Sequence record: PP856017.1
DNA: 64,000 nt
Direction: 5' to 3' (one strand)
Shown here: positions 8,277-53,250 of the stretch, piece by piece
Layout: each line of letters begins with the position of its first letter
Numbering within the stretch: the first letter of the stretch is position 1
Notes under the pieces: model-generated
Databases searched by the model: none
Told to the model about the DNA's origin: nothing
The model's input: only the letters and a program-made list of their open reading frames with translations
Made by a program: the position numbers and the translations under genes

Positions 8277-8296
8277 CGGTTTACCATTAAGTAGAC

Positions 8297-22571: not shown

Positions 22572-23261
22572 CTACGAAGGAACTAATTCAAGACAAGGCC
22601 GCCACACATACACGTTCGATTGGGCATTGTAACTAACATTGCCGCTACCTGTGATATTAGTCCCACCCCGAAAAGCAACAGCATTAGTTCCAGGAGAACT
22701 GTAAGTATTGGCGCAAAAACTGTTTGATTGAGAACTAAAACCAAGATCGCTTGGCAAGTAAGGATTATCGATCTTTGGTCCAGTATAGGTCGTAATGGCG
22801 GGTTCGGAAACGATCGGATAAAACAAATCATTCCACTCGCAACCTGTCAAAACCGCCGGATCGTTGCCTGAATAAACTGGCGTCGGATTATCGCCAGTAG
22901 AAATGAGGCGGATAATGAAAGTCTGACCACCAATTACAATCTTAGCGGTCTGATTTATCCATCCAGCAGACGTCGGGGACGATACCTGAGTAGTGCCGGA
23001 ACCAAAAACGGCACCCCGATTAAATATGCTTTGCCAATTCAGATTTTGACGATAAGGAAGTTTTGCAACATATAGTTCTTTTTCCTTATACATGAAATGC
23101 AACCACGGACTCGTCGTATTTATTGCCGTGCCTGTCGATAATCCAATGCTAGATGATAGTTGAGTGCCACTTACCAGACTGGAAGTAGGAACTTCCCCAA
23201 GAAAAGTCGATGAAAAATCACCCTGTGGTTTCTTTTGTCCTAATAAGAAAGATTCTAACAT
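22572..23261 (-). CDS. virion structural / tail-fibre-associated paralog family protein
   Basis: FLGEVPTSSLVSG..LSSSIG..GTAIN...WLHF...ELYVAK..RQNLNWQSI..RGAVFG pattern typical of multicopy phiKZ-like virion proteins; AT-rich. Confidence 0.65.
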   Translation of the reverse strand: MLESFLLGQKKPQGDFSSTFLGEVPTSSLVSGTQLSSSIGLSTGTAINTTSPWLHFMYKEKELYVAKLPYRQNLNWQSIFNRGAVFGSGTTQVSSPTSAGWINQTAKIVIGGQTFIIRLISTGDNPTPVYSGNDPAVLTGCEWNDLFYPIVSEPAITTYTGPKIDNPYLPSDLGFSSQSNSFCANTYSSPGTNAVAFRGGTNITGSGNVSYNAQSNVYVWRPCLELVPS

Positions 23262-26275: not shown

Positions 26276-26375
26276 AGTTGACTCCGCAAGACTAATTTTG
26301 GTAAGCGAGGAATTCGCTTGTTTTAACCAACAGAACTAAGAACCCAGCAAAAGTTTTAGCCGGAAATTCATTTTG

Positions 26376-26384
26376 ATTATATAT
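26376..26384 (-). promoter_or_regulatory. early-type promoter motif ATATATAAT
   Basis: AT-rich intergenic match to the recurrent motif. Confidence 0.5.
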
Positions 26385-26431
26385 TTGTGATTTAATCTGC
26401 ATTAGATAAGTAATCACACAGAAATAAAACA

Positions 26432-26470
26432 GACATAGACTAATACCAGAGACCTTGCGGTCTCTGGTAT
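26432..26470 (-). terminator. hairpin (GCAA loop) followed by TATGTC
   Basis: ataccagagacc/ggtctctggtat (26443-26470); GACATA at 26432. Confidence 0.7.
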
Positions 26471-26472
26471 CG

Positions 26473-26856
26473 TCATTTCGTTGGCGTCTTTCCGGCTTCT
26501 GTGCGGGCAAGCTGCTGCTCCAGTTTCTTGAGGAATCCATTCCCCTGCCCATACATCTTGGCAGAATGTTTCTTGGCGGAATTCATTACCTTCAAGAAAT
26601 CCCTTCGAGGATAGTGAATCAGTTCATCGAAGGAAAAGCCAAAGATTTCATGCACTCGGTTCTCGGCAAACTGGTCGAGTCGGAAGTCGAGTGGGTCAGC
26701 AACGGCCAGATCCTCACGAGGCGAGCAGAATAGAAGCGGCCAGGGAACTTTTGGATCGTCCGGCAAATCGTGGTTGTAGATTCCAAATGCGGTTTCGTAC
26801 TTCATCCGCATGAACAACTCGGCATCCACCACGTTGGGTAGTTTGGCGGTTGTCAT
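26473..26856 (-). CDS. conserved hypothetical protein, about 127 aa
   Basis: Likely start MTTAKL at 26856 avoids overlap with the upstream gene. Confidence 0.6.
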   Translation of the reverse strand: MTTAKLPNVVDAELFMRMKYETAFGIYNHDLPDDPKVPWPLLFCSPREDLAVADPLDFRLDQFAENRVHEIFGFSFDELIHYPRRDFLKVMNSAKKHSAKMYGQGNGFLKKLEQQLARTEAGKTPTK

Positions 26857-32496: not shown

Positions 32497-32544
32497 GACA
32501 TAGACTACCTACTCCCGCAAGGGAGTAGGTAGTCTACTTATGCC
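32497..32544. terminator. bidirectional 16-bp hairpin with GACATA / TATGCC flanks
   Basis: tagactacctactccc-gcaa-gggagtaggtagtcta between convergent genes. Confidence 0.8.
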
Positions 32545-34146: not shown

Positions 34147-34341
34147 TCAGGGTTTCTCTAAGTTGTATAAGTCTTTCAATTCATCATGAAAAACCCTCAG
34201 CTGAATCATCCAGGATTTTTCAATGTCATTGAATTCGAACTGACAATTGAAAGCATGACCGCTTTGATCAACAACTTGACAGAGAATGCTCTTTTCTTGA
34301 GGCATTTTCTTCAGGATCTCAATTAGCTCTGGTGGTCTCAT
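34147..34341 (-). CDS. small hypothetical protein (64 aa)
   Basis: GAGGT RBS; fills the gap upstream of ACP. Confidence 0.6.
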   Translation of the reverse strand: MRPPELIEILKKMPQEKSILCQVVDQSGHAFNCQFEFNDIEKSWMIQLRVFHDELKDLYNLEKP

Positions 34342-34357
34342 TTAAACCTCAAAAAAA

Positions 34358-34408
34358 TAAGTAGACAGCAAAAAGGGCGGGACAGAGAGGCCGAAGCCTC
34401 CCCATCCC
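34358..34408 (-). terminator. cUUCGg intrinsic terminator closing the large RNA candidate
   Basis: GGGAUGGGGAGGC-UUCG-GCCUCUCUGUCCC followed by U tracts. Confidence 0.75.
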
Positions 34409-34429
34409 AAGCCTAAGATGAAACTGAAC

Positions 34430-34800
34430 TTACACCCCAAAGTCGTCGCATCACCACAAGGAAATGACGAGTGACGACGATGGGCTATAAGCTACTCAGC
34501 GAGTGTCTCCCGACATTTCGCATAGCTTACAACTGGTCCCGAAAAGACCCCTACAATCGATGCGGGCTTAACACACACGAAGGCCCGAGTGCTCGTAACG
34601 CAGCCGCGAACGCGCGCGGCTGCGAGTCGGCAAGGCACCCTATTCCATATCGAGGCGGCAACAAAGGCGGCCTAATGGTAAAGGTCGTGCGGGTAGAGGA
34701 CTCGATTTCGAGACCGATCCTCAGCCGCAATACGACGTGTGTGTTTCGCGGGCCTTTCACCCGAGTGAAGAGCTAGGGCGCGTACGCCGACTCTAACACC
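34430..34800 (-). ncRNA. candidate large structured ncRNA (about 370 nt, multi-branch with pseudoknot)
   Basis: More than eight nested helices, G.U pairs and GNRA/UUCG-type loops on the minus strand; no credible ORF; see findings. Confidence 0.7.
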
Positions 34801-34880
34801 TCTGCCTCGAACAGATCTTCAGAAGCCATCTTGTTAAAGAACGTATCTGCTAGATAGTTAGTCTAGAAGATTGCGCGCAA

Positions 34881-35636
34881 TTACTGCGCGGCGGGCGACT
34901 GCTGGTTTTCGTCGGTCGTGCCAGCCGGAGCTTGCGGATCGACGGCTGCCGGTGCAACCGCTTCCTGCGGTGCTGCTTGAGCCGGATCGGTTTCCACCGG
35001 TGCGACTTCAGCAGGTGCAGCTTGCTCGCCAGCGGCGGGATCGACTTCCGGGGCAGCTTCTTGAGCCACGCCTTCGTCGGCCGCGCCGGACGGCTGAGCT
35101 TGTTCCGTGCTCGCGTCTTCTTGCGAAGCGGCGTCCACGGGTGCAGCGGCTTGTTCGGCCGGAACTTCAACTGCCGGGGCGTCACCTTGCGGTGCTGCAT
35201 CGGCGCCGTTGTCCACGGGCGTTTCAGCTGCTTGATCTGCTGCGGGGGCAGCATCGCCTGCAACCGGCGCATCTGCGGGAGCGGCTTCAGCCGTACCTGC
35301 GTCAGCACCAGCTGCCGGATCTTGTTCGACGGCCGGAGCTTCGTCCGTCGGTTGTGCTTGTTCGGCGGCGGCCGGCGTCGGATCTGCGTCTTGAGTGCCA
35401 GCATCTGCGGCGGGAGCGGTCGATGCTGCTGCGACCGTGGTCACGTCCGTCGGTGCGACGATGGCTTGCGTGCCGTCCGGCAGGTTCACTGCGAGCGGCG
35501 CTGCTGCGTGTTGTTCTTCGTGCTTTTCGAACAACGCGACGATGTGTTGTGCGACGTGTTCCGGCAGTTCAGCCAGGGCTTCGAGTGCCAGGAGTTCAGC
35601 GCGCAATGCGCCGATTGCTTTCGAGATGATGCTCAT
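34881..35636 (-). CDS. Ala/Pro/Asp/Glu-rich largely disordered protein (251 aa)
   Basis: Helical first 43 aa then low-complexity acidic tail; GC-rich codons; GGAAG RBS. Confidence 0.75.
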   Translation of the reverse strand: MSIISKAIGALRAELLALEALAELPEHVAQHIVALFEKHEEQHAAAPLAVNLPDGTQAIVAPTDVTTVAAASTAPAADAGTQDADPTPAAAEQAQPTDEAPAVEQDPAAGADAGTAEAAPADAPVAGDAAPAADQAAETPVDNGADAAPQGDAPAVEVPAEQAAAPVDAASQEDASTEQAQPSGAADEGVAQEAAPEVDPAAGEQAAPAEVAPVETDPAQAAPQEAVAPAAVDPQAPAGTTDENQQSPAAQ

Positions 35637-39709: not shown

Positions 39710-39964
39710 TTAAGCCAGAGCCGTTTCGAACTTCAGGGTTTCCAGCTTGCCTGCACGATACAGAACGCTTTCAACGCGACGCAGTTGATGACCAAACTTC
39801 TTGCGCATCGTTTCAGCTTCGCCCAGCGTGAGATTCATTCCGCGGGTTGCTTCCATCTTGGCAAGCAGTTCTTCACGGGCTTTGACCAGCTTCTTGACAC
39901 GGATCGAGAAGAGGACGGTATTCTTGAGGATATTCTTAAACATGTTGTTCTCCTGGTGACGCAT
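39710..39964 (-). CDS. small basic coiled-coil protein
   Basis: Start probably MFKNIL after AGGAG; early motif upstream. Confidence 0.6.
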   Translation of the reverse strand: MRHQENNMFKNILKNTVLFSIRVKKLVKAREELLAKMEATRGMNLTLGEAETMRKKFGHQLRRVESVLYRAGKLETLKFETALA

Positions 39965-40006
39965 TTTGGAAGGTATATTCAGTCATCATTGCTGAATGTC
40001 ACCGGA

Positions 40007-40015
40007 GTTATATAT
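40007..40015 (-). promoter_or_regulatory. early-type promoter motif ATATATAAC
   Basis: Intergenic match. Confidence 0.5.
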
Positions 40016-40046
40016 AGCTGAAATTCTTTGCAATGCGATTTTACAG

Positions 40047-40081
40047 CAAAAGAAAATACCGGGAAAATCCCGGTATTTTCA
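40047..40081 (-). terminator. intrinsic terminator
   Basis: gaaaataccggga/tcccggtattttc. Confidence 0.7.
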
Positions 40082-40089
40082 TTCAGTAG

Positions 40090-41166
40090 TTACACCTCGA
40101 CACGATAGTCTTTATCCACAAAACCAAGTGTGTCGATGTTCTTCTTGTTCCTCAGATGGGGATTCCACCAAAAGGGTTTTCCATTCCGGATCTTGACATG
40201 ACCACGAACAAAAGAGGCACGGCGCTCGATATGGTATTTATGCTTACTCGAAGCGGCCTTGACTTCTTCCATGCTCTCAAATTCTTTATTCACTTTGACC
40301 AATGTCAAAACTCGGTAAGTATAGAAAGGAAGCTGACGAACAGGAATTCCCGACGCTTCTTTCTGCGTCGGGGTGTAACGACGTACTGGCGCATTGGCAC
40401 AGTTCAGGTAACGAAGAATCTCGTTAACCTGATAATAATCAGAATTCGACCAATGCCGCGCTGTCGTTACGTATTGAGCGTATTGCGGAGATTGACTGTA
40501 ATCGGCATTCGGTAACCGATGCGACATCTTTCTTGCACCACGCAGTGCCAGCATTTCTTGCTCAGAGAGCACCATGAAATTGGCTGCCTTTATATTCCCT
40601 ATCGCTGCTTGTACAACATCGTCCGGCGAGCCTTCAGCTACGCCCGTAAAGCAGATCGGCAAATTAAGCTCTTCATGTATCGCAAGCGCCATGGCATAGC
40701 GATTATCGATGTTCGAACATTTCGGATAAACGAATCCATCTTTACCGACGGTGAAGACATCGAAGATCCTCAAATCGCTATTGAGATTAGGAGCAATTTC
40801 CTCATCACGATAAGCCTTGGCGTTTTCACGTTCGCCTTTGACCTTGTTCAGAGATCTCTGAACACAGAGAATCAGAATCGATTCATTCTCGAACACACAG
40901 ATGGGAAAGGGCAGCCGGCAGTGTTCCCGGTAATCAGAAAACCGAGAGTTCATCTTCTCGATATCCATATTGGCATCCATCTTCATTCCGTAGATCATTT
41001 CAAACTGATCGTTGTACGGTTCAGAATTGATCAGCTCGTACGGAATCACGAACTTGACGGCTTGGACGATGTACTTACGAATCAGCGCCAGATTCTCTTT
41101 ACTGATCTGATTCGACATGGATTTGATAAAACCCGTCTTAGTGACGACTTGTTGACTAATCAGCAT
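40090..41166 (-). CDS. hypothetical early protein (358 aa) with C-terminal VRGH...WWxPH motif
   Basis: AT-richer ORF; promoter motif at 41228. Confidence 0.7.
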   Translation of the reverse strand: MLISQQVVTKTGFIKSMSNQISKENLALIRKYIVQAVKFVIPYELINSEPYNDQFEMIYGMKMDANMDIEKMNSRFSDYREHCRLPFPICVFENESILILCVQRSLNKVKGERENAKAYRDEEIAPNLNSDLRIFDVFTVGKDGFVYPKCSNIDNRYAMALAIHEELNLPICFTGVAEGSPDDVVQAAIGNIKAANFMVLSEQEMLALRGARKMSHRLPNADYSQSPQYAQYVTTARHWSNSDYYQVNEILRYLNCANAPVRRYTPTQKEASGIPVRQLPFYTYRVLTLVKVNKEFESMEEVKAASSKHKYHIERRASFVRGHVKIRNGKPFWWNPHLRNKKNIDTLGFVDKDYRVEV

Positions 41167-41227
41167 TTTGGCTCTCCAAAGAGAATTTTAAAAGAATGAA
41201 ATTGATTCTTTACAGAATCTCCCATCA

Positions 41228-41236
41228 GTTATATAT
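41228..41236 (-). promoter_or_regulatory. early-type promoter motif ATATATAAC
   Basis: Intergenic match just after the helicase terminator. Confidence 0.5.
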
Positions 41237-41255
41237 GTTTGTCTTATTTTAAAAG

Positions 41256-41305
41256 ACAAAAAAAAATAAGCACACTACCATGCCCGAAGGCATGGTAGTG
41301 TATGC
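41256..41305 (-). terminator. cUUCGg intrinsic terminator of the helicase gene
   Basis: cactaccatgcc-cgaa-ggcatggtagtg (41273-41300) with A-run. Confidence 0.8.
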
Positions 41306-47368: not shown

Positions 47369-48004
47369 TCAGGGTTCGATATAATAATATATGCCGCTGA
47401 ATTTTGACCCTGGTTTCTTGGATTCTGCAAAACGCCACATGAGGGTATTGAGGTTAACCCCTAACTCTCTTGCTGCTTGACTTATAGACGGGTATACTAC
47501 ACCGTCGATCGAAACAGCTTTGCTGGTGGATTTCCAGGCCTTTTCCATCTTACCTGTAATCGCGTTCCGTTTTCCAACCTCGCTTTGTTTTAATTTGTTT
47601 TCCGGTGACCATTTTCCACCATGACCGGCAACCGCTGAGTTGGTAAACACATTGAACAATTTTCCTGATCCAATATGTTTGTCGAGTAATAGCTGCTCGA
47701 TTTTGTAACCTTCATCGCGGTCTGCTACCCGAATGAAACTTATTCGAAGTGCTTTATTTTTGGCAGCATTATAATGTTTCTGAAACGAACTGTTTCCATG
47801 CTCGTTCCTTTTCAGGTCAAGAGTGTGGGCATAGATTCGTTTATAAAGATCATTGGTGCTGCCGATATAATACATGTCGCATTCTTCCAGAAGAAGAATG
47901 TATACGGCATGAATAGAATGCGTTTTGCGGTGGAGCTTCGTTTGTCCATTCTTGACAGCAGACAGCTCGGTAGAAAGAATTTGGTCAATCCGATCTTGAT
48001 TCAT
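47369..48004 (-). mobile_element. free-standing GIY-YIG homing endonuclease
   Basis: AVYILL...YYIGSTNDLYKRI..H, conserved E/N, C-terminal IDGVVYPSISQAARELG DNA-binding module; AT-rich. Confidence 0.88.
47384..47392 (-). promoter_or_regulatory. early-type motif ATATATTAT inside the endonuclease 3' end
   Basis: About 80 nt upstream of the nvRNAP beta start. Confidence 0.45.
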
Positions 48005-48039
48005 TTCCTTTTTAAATAGTCAGGATAGTATTCCCAACA

Positions 48040-48048
48040 GTAATATAT
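48040..48048 (-). promoter_or_regulatory. early promoter ATATATTAC
   Basis: Exact phiKZ early consensus TATATTAC, 36 nt upstream of the GIY-YIG ATG. Confidence 0.65.
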
Positions 48049-48073
48049 TTCTCAACTTTTTTACAGGAAGACT

Positions 48074-48415
48074 ATGCCATCCATCATCGACAACATCGAT
48101 AATCAGGGTCCGGCGATCTATTATTCGGACACATTCAGACAGATGATCGAAGATCACCTGGATGTACTCAAAACGATGTCTACGACACAAGTTCGTGCGA
48201 TCACCGACGATGATTGGGCGACGTTGTACAAATATGAAGGTGACTTCTACGGTCTTCTCGGAGCGTTACAGTTCGATCGTCGGTACCACTGGACGATCAT
48301 GCGCATGAACGGTTATCGTAGCCGGTTCGAAGCTACGACCGATATCTCTACGCTCCTGTTGCCCGACTGGTCCTACGTGGACAAGCTTGCACAGCTGAGT
48401 AAAGAGAAGAAGTAA
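48074..48415 (+). CDS. conserved small protein, possibly LysM/gpX-like virion component
   Basis: YKYEGDFYGLL...WTIMRMNG...LLLPD; AGGAAG RBS. Confidence 0.55.
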   Translation: MPSIIDNIDNQGPAIYYSDTFRQMIEDHLDVLKTMSTTQVRAITDDDWATLYKYEGDFYGLLGALQFDRRYHWTIMRMNGYRSRFEATTDISTLLLPDWSYVDKLAQLSKEKK

Positions 48416-53184: not shown

Positions 53185-53193
53185 ATGATATAT
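53185..53193 (-). promoter_or_regulatory. early-type motif ATATATCAT
   Basis: 40 nt upstream of the gp68-like start. Confidence 0.5.
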
Positions 53194-53222
53194 GTTTGTG
53201 TTTTTTTATAAACAGGGTTTAC

Positions 53223-53250
53223 CACTGAGGAGGCCGAAGCCTCCTCAGTG
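53223..53250 (-). terminator. 12-bp cUUCGg hairpin after chmC
   Basis: cactgaggaggc-cgaa-gcctcctcagtg. Confidence 0.75.

Follow-up and report, generated by a model that had tools for sequence, protein, structure and literature searches.

What, if anything, is encoded in a 540-nucleotide (nt) gap that lies between two genes of a phage genome? The question arises in the final 64 kb of Burkholderia phage vB_BgluM-SURPRISE13 (PP856017.1; hereafter SURPRISE13), a stretch of 64,000 nt that we call the window (window position equals record position minus 163,647), where the gap separates a gene for a low-complexity protein from a gene of 64 amino acids (aa). SURPRISE13 belongs to the genus Chiangmaivirus of the family Chimalliviridae. 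It shares average nucleotide identity of ~84% with RSL2, RSF1, FLC6 and FLC8, and its published annotation holds 236 proteins, a nuclear-shell homologue among them, and zero RNA genes (PMC11898562); the description as a nucleus-forming phage, given originally from the bare sequence, is thus borne out. The same original prediction had read the gap as a large, multi-domain, pseudoknotted non-coding RNA (ncRNA) on the minus strand. Comparison of homologues leaves us highly confident that the element is a genuine structured ncRNA. On its role we are more guarded: the account we favor, to which we would give somewhat less than an even chance, is a gene, particular to the genus, for a stable and highly structured ncRNA, which termination would release and which would engage a partner through its invariant unpaired segments.

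The region is present, by blastn, in all 11 Chiangmaivirus records, which amount to nine genomes and about five distinct RNA lineages, with identities of 72-85% over more than 92% of the RNA length; nine of the 11 GenBank records leave it unannotated. Eight sequences make up the set in which helices were compared, and counts of sequences below refer to that set. Their alignment consists of invariant blocks interleaved with unalignable stretches, such that the cores of the RNA are nearly invariant while the peripheral arms are swapped, lengthened or deleted yet remain hairpins. In bulk, the fraction of invariant columns in the RNA (0.50) equals that at third codon positions of the neighboring 134-aa gene (0.51), which leaves compensation, together with the way the invariant blocks cluster, to carry the case for a structured RNA.

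Protein coding does not account for the gap. No open reading frame (ORF) is conserved in it, the longest ORFs differing in position and strand between homologues; variable sites are spread over the three phases as 50, 62 and 63, and indels measure 1, 2, 5, 6, 16 and 17 nt rather than keeping to multiples of three. The earlier judgment that the gap holds no credible ORF accordingly stands, there being neither an ORF fixed in position and frame nor a three-nucleotide periodicity of substitution. A leader peptide in the conserved 5′ block was considered and rejected, as its ATG is absent in RsoM3USA and the substitutions in it are non-synonymous.

Folding statistics are informative once homologues are combined. 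Against shuffles, a 481-nt stretch folds better on both strands (z = -3.76 and -3.87), and since the two beat shuffles about equally, single-sequence folding alone does not discriminate. RNAalifold, in contrast, yields -132.8 kcal/mol with 191 G·U cells for the minus strand and -95.3 kcal/mol with 57 G·U cells for the plus strand, an asymmetry of 37 kcal/mol in favor of the strand originally proposed. These figures also bear on whether a functional RNA is present at all, the alternative being an element that works as DNA (an origin, a packaging or a regulatory site) or a decaying spacer with incidental hairpins. Mean conservation equal to that of synonymous sites, and the excess folding of both strands, are what such a tract could display, but the G·U-rich compensation is specific to one strand, the RNAalifold energy favors the minus strand, invariant blocks alternate with rebuilt arms that still pair, and the element is retained in all genomes. 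We regard this as the least probable of the explanations weighed here.

The structure model combines RNAalifold output, per-arm and full-length folds of each lineage, and register-corrected helix tables, and comprises 136 pairs. Counted on an uncurated MAFFT alignment, 25 of the 136 pairs are changed on both sides compared with 15.2 +/- 2.2 in shuffles, and 0 of 500 shuffles reach 25, shuffle counts not being probabilities. Similarly, 83% of cells are paired, a figure that falls to 37-48% when partners are slid as a control. The helix tables identify the low scores of P6a/b, P7a, P8 and P9b/c in these counts as artefacts of alignment register; realignment to a covariance model (A6) left the register of the P9 tip uncorrected, so explicit tables for each lineage were used. 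With register corrected, compensation is seen in P1, P3, P4, P6, P6.1, P7, P9c, P10a and the terminator. Helices belonging to one strand are, in other words, kept by compensatory and wobble changes across about five lineages, as in conserved structured ncRNAs generally, and the proposed large, multi-domain minus-strand RNA with a terminator of its own is conserved in homologues.

The individual helices illustrate how this conservation is achieved (Table 1). P2 is an extreme case, in which three unrelated sequences (AGAGU/GCUCU, CAGGAU/AUCCUG and GGAA/UUCC) fold to one shape. Among the arms that follow, P5a changes from GCGG/CCGC to GUGG/CUGC, giving two G·U pairs that are possible only on the minus strand, and the base stem of P6 reads ACCUU/AGGGU in SURPRISE13 and AUCAC/GUGAU in relatives. 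An extra hairpin, P6.1, is missing only from the SURPRISE13 lineage and is built elsewhere from UCC/GGA or CUC/GAG, with two double changes. The tip of P7 occurs as CGCAGCCGCG, CGGCGCCGCG or CGCUGGCGCG with 3′ strands that match, and its middle stem as UGC-CG, UGACGU or GCUU, again with matching partners. The pairing of P8 is left untested by covariation because the junction and P8 block scarcely varies. In P9, three versions of the tip stem occur (UGUC/GACA, CGUC/GACG and CGUU/AACG), two of its positions showing double changes, and wobble pairs account for all variation in the outer stem. P10a turns from CCCA/UGGG into CCCU/AGGG in three sequences, while the P10 tip is deleted in RSL2 and rebuilt in RSF1. 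The 3′ tail is identical in six of the eight sequences, RSF1 carrying three substitutions and RSL2 a 1-nt deletion. All helices named in the original prediction can be formed in SURPRISE13 where it had placed them, with G34736 used in two of them, and several gain support from the homologues, namely the GC hairpin, the long arm, the UAAGCU/AGCUUA stem with its GGGA loop, and UCGUCG/CGACGA. A further candidate, a helix closing the 5′ and 3′ ends (AAGAUGG with UCAUCUU), was rejected, as it is disrupted, with no compensating change, in both RsoM3USA and the FLC lineage.

Two observations on the architecture stand apart from the model. The RSL2 copy of the RNA (L009 1517-1976) is a mosaic, with a P2 of the RSF1 type, the remainder of the FLC type and the 17 nt of the P10 tip deleted, which suggests recombination or modular arm exchange inside the RNA gene. 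In addition, a UGUAAG-like hexamer occurs three times on the minus strand (34430-34434, 34526-34531 and 34550-34554), in the tail, the P9 5′ strand and the junction before P8. Two of these copies can each pair with AGCUUAUA (34486-34493), making P9 and an extended P10 alternative structures between which covariation does not decide; in the pairing of AGCUUAUA with the tail, RSF1 carries one compensatory and two disruptive changes.

How, then, is the RNA organized overall? Judged from the aligned sequences, P4 is its best-supported helix, with 12 pairs, 100% of cells paired, C-G replaced by U-A (five versus three sequences) and one U·G in RSF1, and every lineage forms it in its minimum-free-energy fold when no constraints are set. 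The 10-bp pairing at its heart (AACACACACG/CGUGUGUGUU, 34736-45 with 34570-79) had been put forward as a long-range pseudoknot. The pairing itself holds in every sequence, with a compensatory change and a wobble, whereas the pseudoknot label is not established, P4 being nested in every minimum-free-energy fold. The stem that P4 would cross, CGGGC/GCCCG, has five Watson-Crick pairs in SURPRISE13 and RsoM3USA and is complete with one U·G in RSF1, but is down to three invariant G-C pairs in five of the eight sequences and exhibits no covariation; the nested alternative partner, GCC/GGC, is paired in eight of eight, also without covariation. As neither partner covaries, covariation cannot separate the two topologies. 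P4 may instead close a nested junction of three arms, and a pseudoknot need not apply.

The outer helices with which the original prediction had enclosed the junction fared less well. GAGUCGGC/GCCGACUC is paired in only 58.9% of cells and is not conserved; GCGCCCUA/UAGGGUGC reaches 73%, several of its pairs being broken in four to seven of the eight sequences; and the CUUCAC/GUGAA hairpin, at 75%, is broken in the FLC lineage. In this region relatives fold a local P2 and a P3 of the form CGGGU-GAAAG-GCCCG, and it is P3 that takes the place of the CUUCAC/GUGAA hairpin. With the outer helices dropped, P4 can be an ordinary nested long-range helix. In SURPRISE13 alone, P2 and the P6/P7 junction are complementary over two neighboring 8-bp stretches (34624-34642 with 34774-34793, minus strand), a complementarity worth -33.3 kcal/mol and reached by 1 of 60 shuffles, other lineages lying at chance level; it may represent a lineage-specific alternative conformer or a coincidence.

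Table 1. Coordinates, in the window, of the proposed RNA gene, its parts, related terminator sites and the flanking genes
Feature	Coordinates	Strand	Description
Whole proposed RNA gene	34366..34843	-	Conserved 5′ block to end of terminator U tract; ~460-478 nt
Invariant block CGUUCUUUAACAA	34831..34843	-	Shortly 5′ of P1; invariant in 8/8
P1 hairpin GCUUCUG/CAGAGGU	34798..34826	-	7 bp paired in 8/8; U·G to G·U on both sides in RSF1
P1 loop AAGAUCUGUUCGAGG	34805-34819	-	Invariant 15 nt with palindrome AGAUCU inside
P2	34769..34794	-	Hypervariable local hairpin; outer stem, asymmetric loop, 4-bp tip
P3 hairpin (C)GGGU-GAAAG-GCCC(G)	34750..34762	-	GNRA-like pentaloop; G-C to A-U on both sides in RSF1
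P4, 5′ strand	34736..34749	-	GC extension, GA internal loop, AACACACACG; partner 34566-34579
P4, 3′ strand	34566..34579	-	CGUGUGUGUU, AA, GC; partner 34736-34749
P5 arm	34686..34734	-	CGU/ACG, GCGG/CCGC, GAGGA/UCCUC, tip; distal stem rebuilt per lineage
P6 arm	34637..34685	-	ACCUU/AGGGU, CCAU/AUGG, AGGC/GCCU and invariant CGAUAUG; base stem compensated
P7 arm	34583..34636	-	Base GCC(U)/(G)GGC, variable middle, 10-bp GC-rich tip, invariant CGCGUU loop; tip and middle compensated
Junction CCCGCAUCGAUUGUA and P8 hairpin GGUCUU-UUC-GGGACC	34535..34565	-	Near-invariant junction; almost no variation
P9 three-tier hairpin	34486..34531	-	Invariant GGGA (GNRA) tetraloop at 34508-34511; tip compensated
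P10 arm	34436..34484	-	CCCA/UGGG, GUCGUC/GACGAC, dispensable tip; P10a compensated
24-nt tail UGUAAGUUCAGUUUCAUCUUAGGC	34411..34434	-	Predicted single-stranded
Intrinsic terminator	34357..34409	-	14-bp stem with UUCG loop (34378-34409), CCCUUUUUGCUG, then UCUACUUAU; terminator scan
TCTACTTA sites	8288-8295 (-), 32533-32540 (+), 34358-34365 (-), record 125342 (-)		After strong hairpins
64-aa gene	34147..34341	-	Neighbor 3′ of RNA, outside RNA; protein conserved in 5 genomes
Ala/Pro/acidic low-complexity gene	34881..35636	-	Neighbor 5′ of RNA; Ala/Pro/Asp/Glu-rich; from ORF list; no Pfam match

The ends of the RNA, as predicted from sequence, lie at ~34843/34826 and 34366; between them fall the 5′ hairpin, the 24 invariant nt of the 3′ tail and, last, a terminator of the canonical phage type. 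The extent first suggested (~370 nt) was too short, since it omits P1 and the 3′ tail of an RNA of ~460 nt. At the 3′ end, a terminator scan recovers the cUUCGg terminator noted originally, and its stem is compensated among homologues by two double changes and one wobble. The layout of a GC-rich hairpin, a U run and then GCUG or GCUU recurs after other genes of SURPRISE13, so this is an intrinsic terminator of the form usual in the phage. Across the genome, TCTACTTA has four exact occurrences, each of them 0-12 nt past a hairpin of -24 to -31 kcal/mol. Two of the four read CTTATGCCGT (TCTACTTATGCCGTC), a match to the tail of the phiKZ terminator motif YTTATKYYGT, and the CTTATTTTTT that follows the RNA is a near match to the same tail (PMC10914365). 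On these sequence matches, TCTACTTA/TCTACTTATGCCGTC looks like a terminator signature common across Chimalliviridae.

At the 5′ end, CGUUCUUUAACAA is invariant even though the SURPRISE13 sequence further 5′ is unrelated to that of its relatives, and it may mark the promoter and start region or else form the 5′ leader of the transcript. The block does not recur as a motif, its near matches elsewhere in the window falling inside coding sequence; CGTTCTTTAACAAG was likewise entertained as a repeated promoter and rejected. Separately, an AT-rich element resembling ATATATAAC or ACATATATAACT occurs downstream of terminators on the minus strand at 26276-26473, 39944-40090, 41167-41305, 48005-48074 and 53185-53225, and may be a phage promoter motif.

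The placement of the terminator raises the principal competing explanation. All genes around the locus are on the minus strand, and immediately downstream of the RNA, in the same orientation, is an operon composed of the 64-aa gene, an ACP-like gene, the 134-aa gene and a 282-aa gene. The RNA could therefore be a cis-acting leader, that is, a protein- or ligand-sensing attenuator or riboswitch-like element that sets read-through of the terminator into this operon. The terminator ends ~25 nt before the ribosome-binding site of the 64-aa gene with no recognizable promoter between, the ACP-like and 134-aa genes come after the RNA in every genome compared, and terminators in the 5′ untranslated regions (UTRs) of phiKZ operate in two modes, yielding a short RNA or read-through (PMC10914365). 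A leader of this kind would be expected to have mutually exclusive terminator and antiterminator pairings, but no pairing that competes with the terminator was found. The P10 tip and the tail were tried as candidates, checked by eye on the homologue sequences, and are uncompensated where the terminator varies, whereas changes in the terminator 5′ strand are compensated within the terminator only. Moreover, ~430 nt precede the terminator, far above known leader sizes, and riboswitch and T-box models give no match. The adjacent downstream gene is dispensable as well: kept in SURPRISE13, RsoM3USA, RSF1, RSL2 and FLC4-4C/5C, the 64-aa gene is lost from FLC6, FLC8 and FLC4-11C, which carry a 4-codon remnant in its place and still possess the RNA and its terminator. 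On balance we hold a leader to be rather unlikely, if the most serious competitor. By analogy with the phiKZ cases, moreover, an independent RNA and a leader would not be mutually exclusive.

The retention of RNA and terminator where the 64-aa gene is lost, the strong terminator of usual form and the want of an antiterminator together argue for an independent unit, and the invariant GGGA tetraloop, the GAAAR loop, the long-range helix, the variable periphery and the invariant unpaired stretches give it the look of a folded particle. In the scenario we favor, transcription of the minus strand would start near 34826-34843 and stop at the phage terminator near 34366-34375. The transcript would fold into the 5′ hairpins P1-P3, a 12-bp P4 closing the junction of arms P5-P7, a 3′ domain of P8-P10, the tail and the terminator. 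Termination would free the RNA to act as a folded particle whose exposed invariant segments (the P1 loop, the P4/P8 junction and the 3′ tail) could bind a putative partner, most likely a phage or host protein; so bound, the RNA might serve as a ribonucleoprotein scaffold or as a decoy. The functions first suggested for it (ribozyme, scaffold or anti-defence decoy) are all conjectural. Since the RNA ends just 5′ of the co-directional operon, termination would also restrict read-through into it. There is precedent in phiKZ, which makes abundant short RNAs through termination upstream of genes (PMC10914365, PMC8545117).

Several considerations weigh against this scenario. With only about five independent lineages the covariation statistics are weak, and the bulk conservation of the RNA is no higher than that of the third codon positions of its neighbor. 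The short spacing between terminator and ribosome-binding site, lacking a visible promoter, would fit a cis-acting leader too. Upstream of the RNA the AT-rich ATATATAAC-like element is absent and no promoter was recognized; as the ends are predicted only, the RNA could be the 3′ UTR of the upstream gene. The binding partner, finally, is putative.

Might the RNA belong to a family already described? A search of the whole window against Rfam 15 (4227 families) at gathering thresholds, the first check recommended for this locus, returned no matches. At E <= 10, positions 34300-34900 and four homologous loci gave only chance-level microRNA and small-RNA matches, all well under the threshold and none shared between homologues. 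The families covered include RNase P, tmRNA, SRP, 6S, group I/II introns, GOLLD, ROOL, OLE, HEARO, riboswitches and T-box. ARAGORN detected no tRNA or tmRNA gene in the window, and there is no tRNA-like domain or tag frame in the RNA. Nor were homologues found outside the genus, in IMG/VR, metagenomes, bacterial genomes or the sister genus (RP12). When three separate invariant motifs were scanned against IMG/VR, RSL2 and RSF1 alone came back, and 41 other IMG/VR loci with the P8 motif had no match to the covariance model; the metagenome scan produced 18 loci, all chance matches of 30-50 nt, and the GTDB genome scan one chance match. With the flanking proteins as queries, tblastn recovered just the same 11 records, the whole genome of RP12, the nearest outgroup, contained no nhmmer or covariance-model match, and the remainder of the SURPRISE13 genome held no paralogue. 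The literature on phiKZ-like phages describes only short ncRNAs of 71-250 nt (PMC10914365, PMC8545117, PMC13282480), and none was found on ncRNAs of Chiangmaivirus. As far as these comparisons of sequence reach, the RNA is an undescribed family without a detectable relative outside the genus.

The same searches constrain two further explanations. Large ribozymes typically combine considerable size, a long-range helix, GNRA loops and invariant junctions. The RNA resembles them in all four respects and might cleave or process itself, or supply the RNA subunit of a catalytic ribonucleoprotein, yet at E <= 10 the ribozyme and intron models of Rfam still give no match. It interrupts no gene and so is not an intron, and there is no associated enzyme gene nearby (no reverse transcriptase, nuclease or recombinase lies near the locus). 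A ribozyme is, in our estimation, very unlikely. The invariant stretches of 24 and 15 nt predicted to be unpaired in the tail and P1 loop could alternatively be seeds of an antisense regulator of phage or host mRNAs. No prominent target of either emerged from the phage genome, where the best non-self duplexes (-24.1 and -20.6 kcal/mol) are lost in a continuum of similar matches, and the window contains no near-exact complements, which leaves antisense regulation highly improbable. A more ambitious proposal, improbable though less so than these, would place the RNA in a new class of large functional RNAs peculiar to nucleus-forming phages, with the fold as such doing the work, whether as a ribozyme, as an architectural homo-oligomer formed through the invariant palindromic loops in the manner of ROOL, GOLLD and OLE, or as an RNA with a role linked to the phage nucleus, such as transcript retention or export, or sequestration of a host factor.

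The general kind, a large structured phage ncRNA ending at a terminator upstream of genes, has precedents, of which the terminated ncRNAs of phiKZ are the nearest. Like the Chiangmaivirus RNA they come from Chimalliviridae, are intergenic and co-directional with their neighbors, end at a hairpin terminator just 5′ of the next gene and are conserved within a genus (PMC10914365; Grad-seq candidates in PMC8545117), and in both cases the terminator lies inside the 5′ UTR of a co-directional gene. The phiKZ RNAs, however, consist of one or two stem-loops in 71-250 nt (PMC10914365), whereas the RNA predicted here would run to ~460 nt and contain more than 10 helices, among them a long-range one, as well as a GNRA loop. 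The two share no sequence similarity, and the Chiangmaivirus RNA is known from sequence alone. GOLLD and ROOL, which occur in phages or prophages, offer a second comparison. Together with OLE they are large ornate RNAs that form homo-oligomers (PMC12286853). They resemble the present RNA in their large, intricate fold with many arms and conserved loops, and in having no known biochemical function; the palindromes AGAUCU (P1 loop) and AUCGAU (junction), invariant and unpaired in the model, could in principle allow kissing contacts. Unlike them, the Chiangmaivirus RNA is smaller and confined to one phage genus, and their Rfam models do not match it. Attenuating leaders (riboswitches, T-box and protein-binding leaders) likewise place a structured domain and an intrinsic terminator directly 5′ of a co-directional operon, but the Chiangmaivirus RNA has no model match or detectable antiterminator, is much larger and adjoins a dispensable gene. 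With RNase P RNA, group I/II introns and tmRNA it has in common GNRA loops, a multi-arm junction closed by a long-range helix, and a core that is invariant while the periphery varies, and it differs in having no covariance-model match at E <= 10, no tRNA-like domain or tag and no interrupted gene.

Large ncRNAs of complex fold are rare, and new classes have tended to uncover unexpected biochemistry. For nucleus-forming jumbo phages no ncRNA of comparable size has been described, those of phiKZ being short, simple terminated fragments. As transcription and translation are separated in these phages, an untranslated RNA raises questions of destination and binding partner. The family is also a compact example of modular arm replacement around an invariant core, and its ~480 nt, empty in most GenBank records of the genus, deserve annotation as an RNA gene. 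Its narrow distribution, in one genus, tempers this interest.

The neighborhood and the rest of the window yielded some smaller observations. Scanning the neighboring proteins against Pfam matched only PP-binding and DUF3307. The upstream low-complexity gene is variable in length (251 aa in SURPRISE13, 353-450 aa in relatives), and in relatives an 11-bp hairpin that covaries comes after it, with UCUCGUUCUUU next, which could be its terminator. In FLC4-4C/5C, the annotated start of the 64-aa gene has been extended back into the terminator of the RNA (L003 2014-2028). Farther away, a GIY-YIG endonuclease gene (47369-48004, minus strand) directly adjoins an RNA polymerase beta-subunit gene, recalling the homing endonucleases of other Chimalliviridae. 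A 767-nt gap between the DNA polymerase gene and a lectin-like gene holds an intact 229-aa ORF (22572-23261, minus strand) absent from the GenBank annotation, probably a missed gene and not an RNA. Outside the window, at 154602-155196 of PP856017.1 (L043 4903-5497), lies another unannotated stretch, of 594 nt, with a GGAGGCUUCGUGCCUCC hairpin and possible small ORFs.

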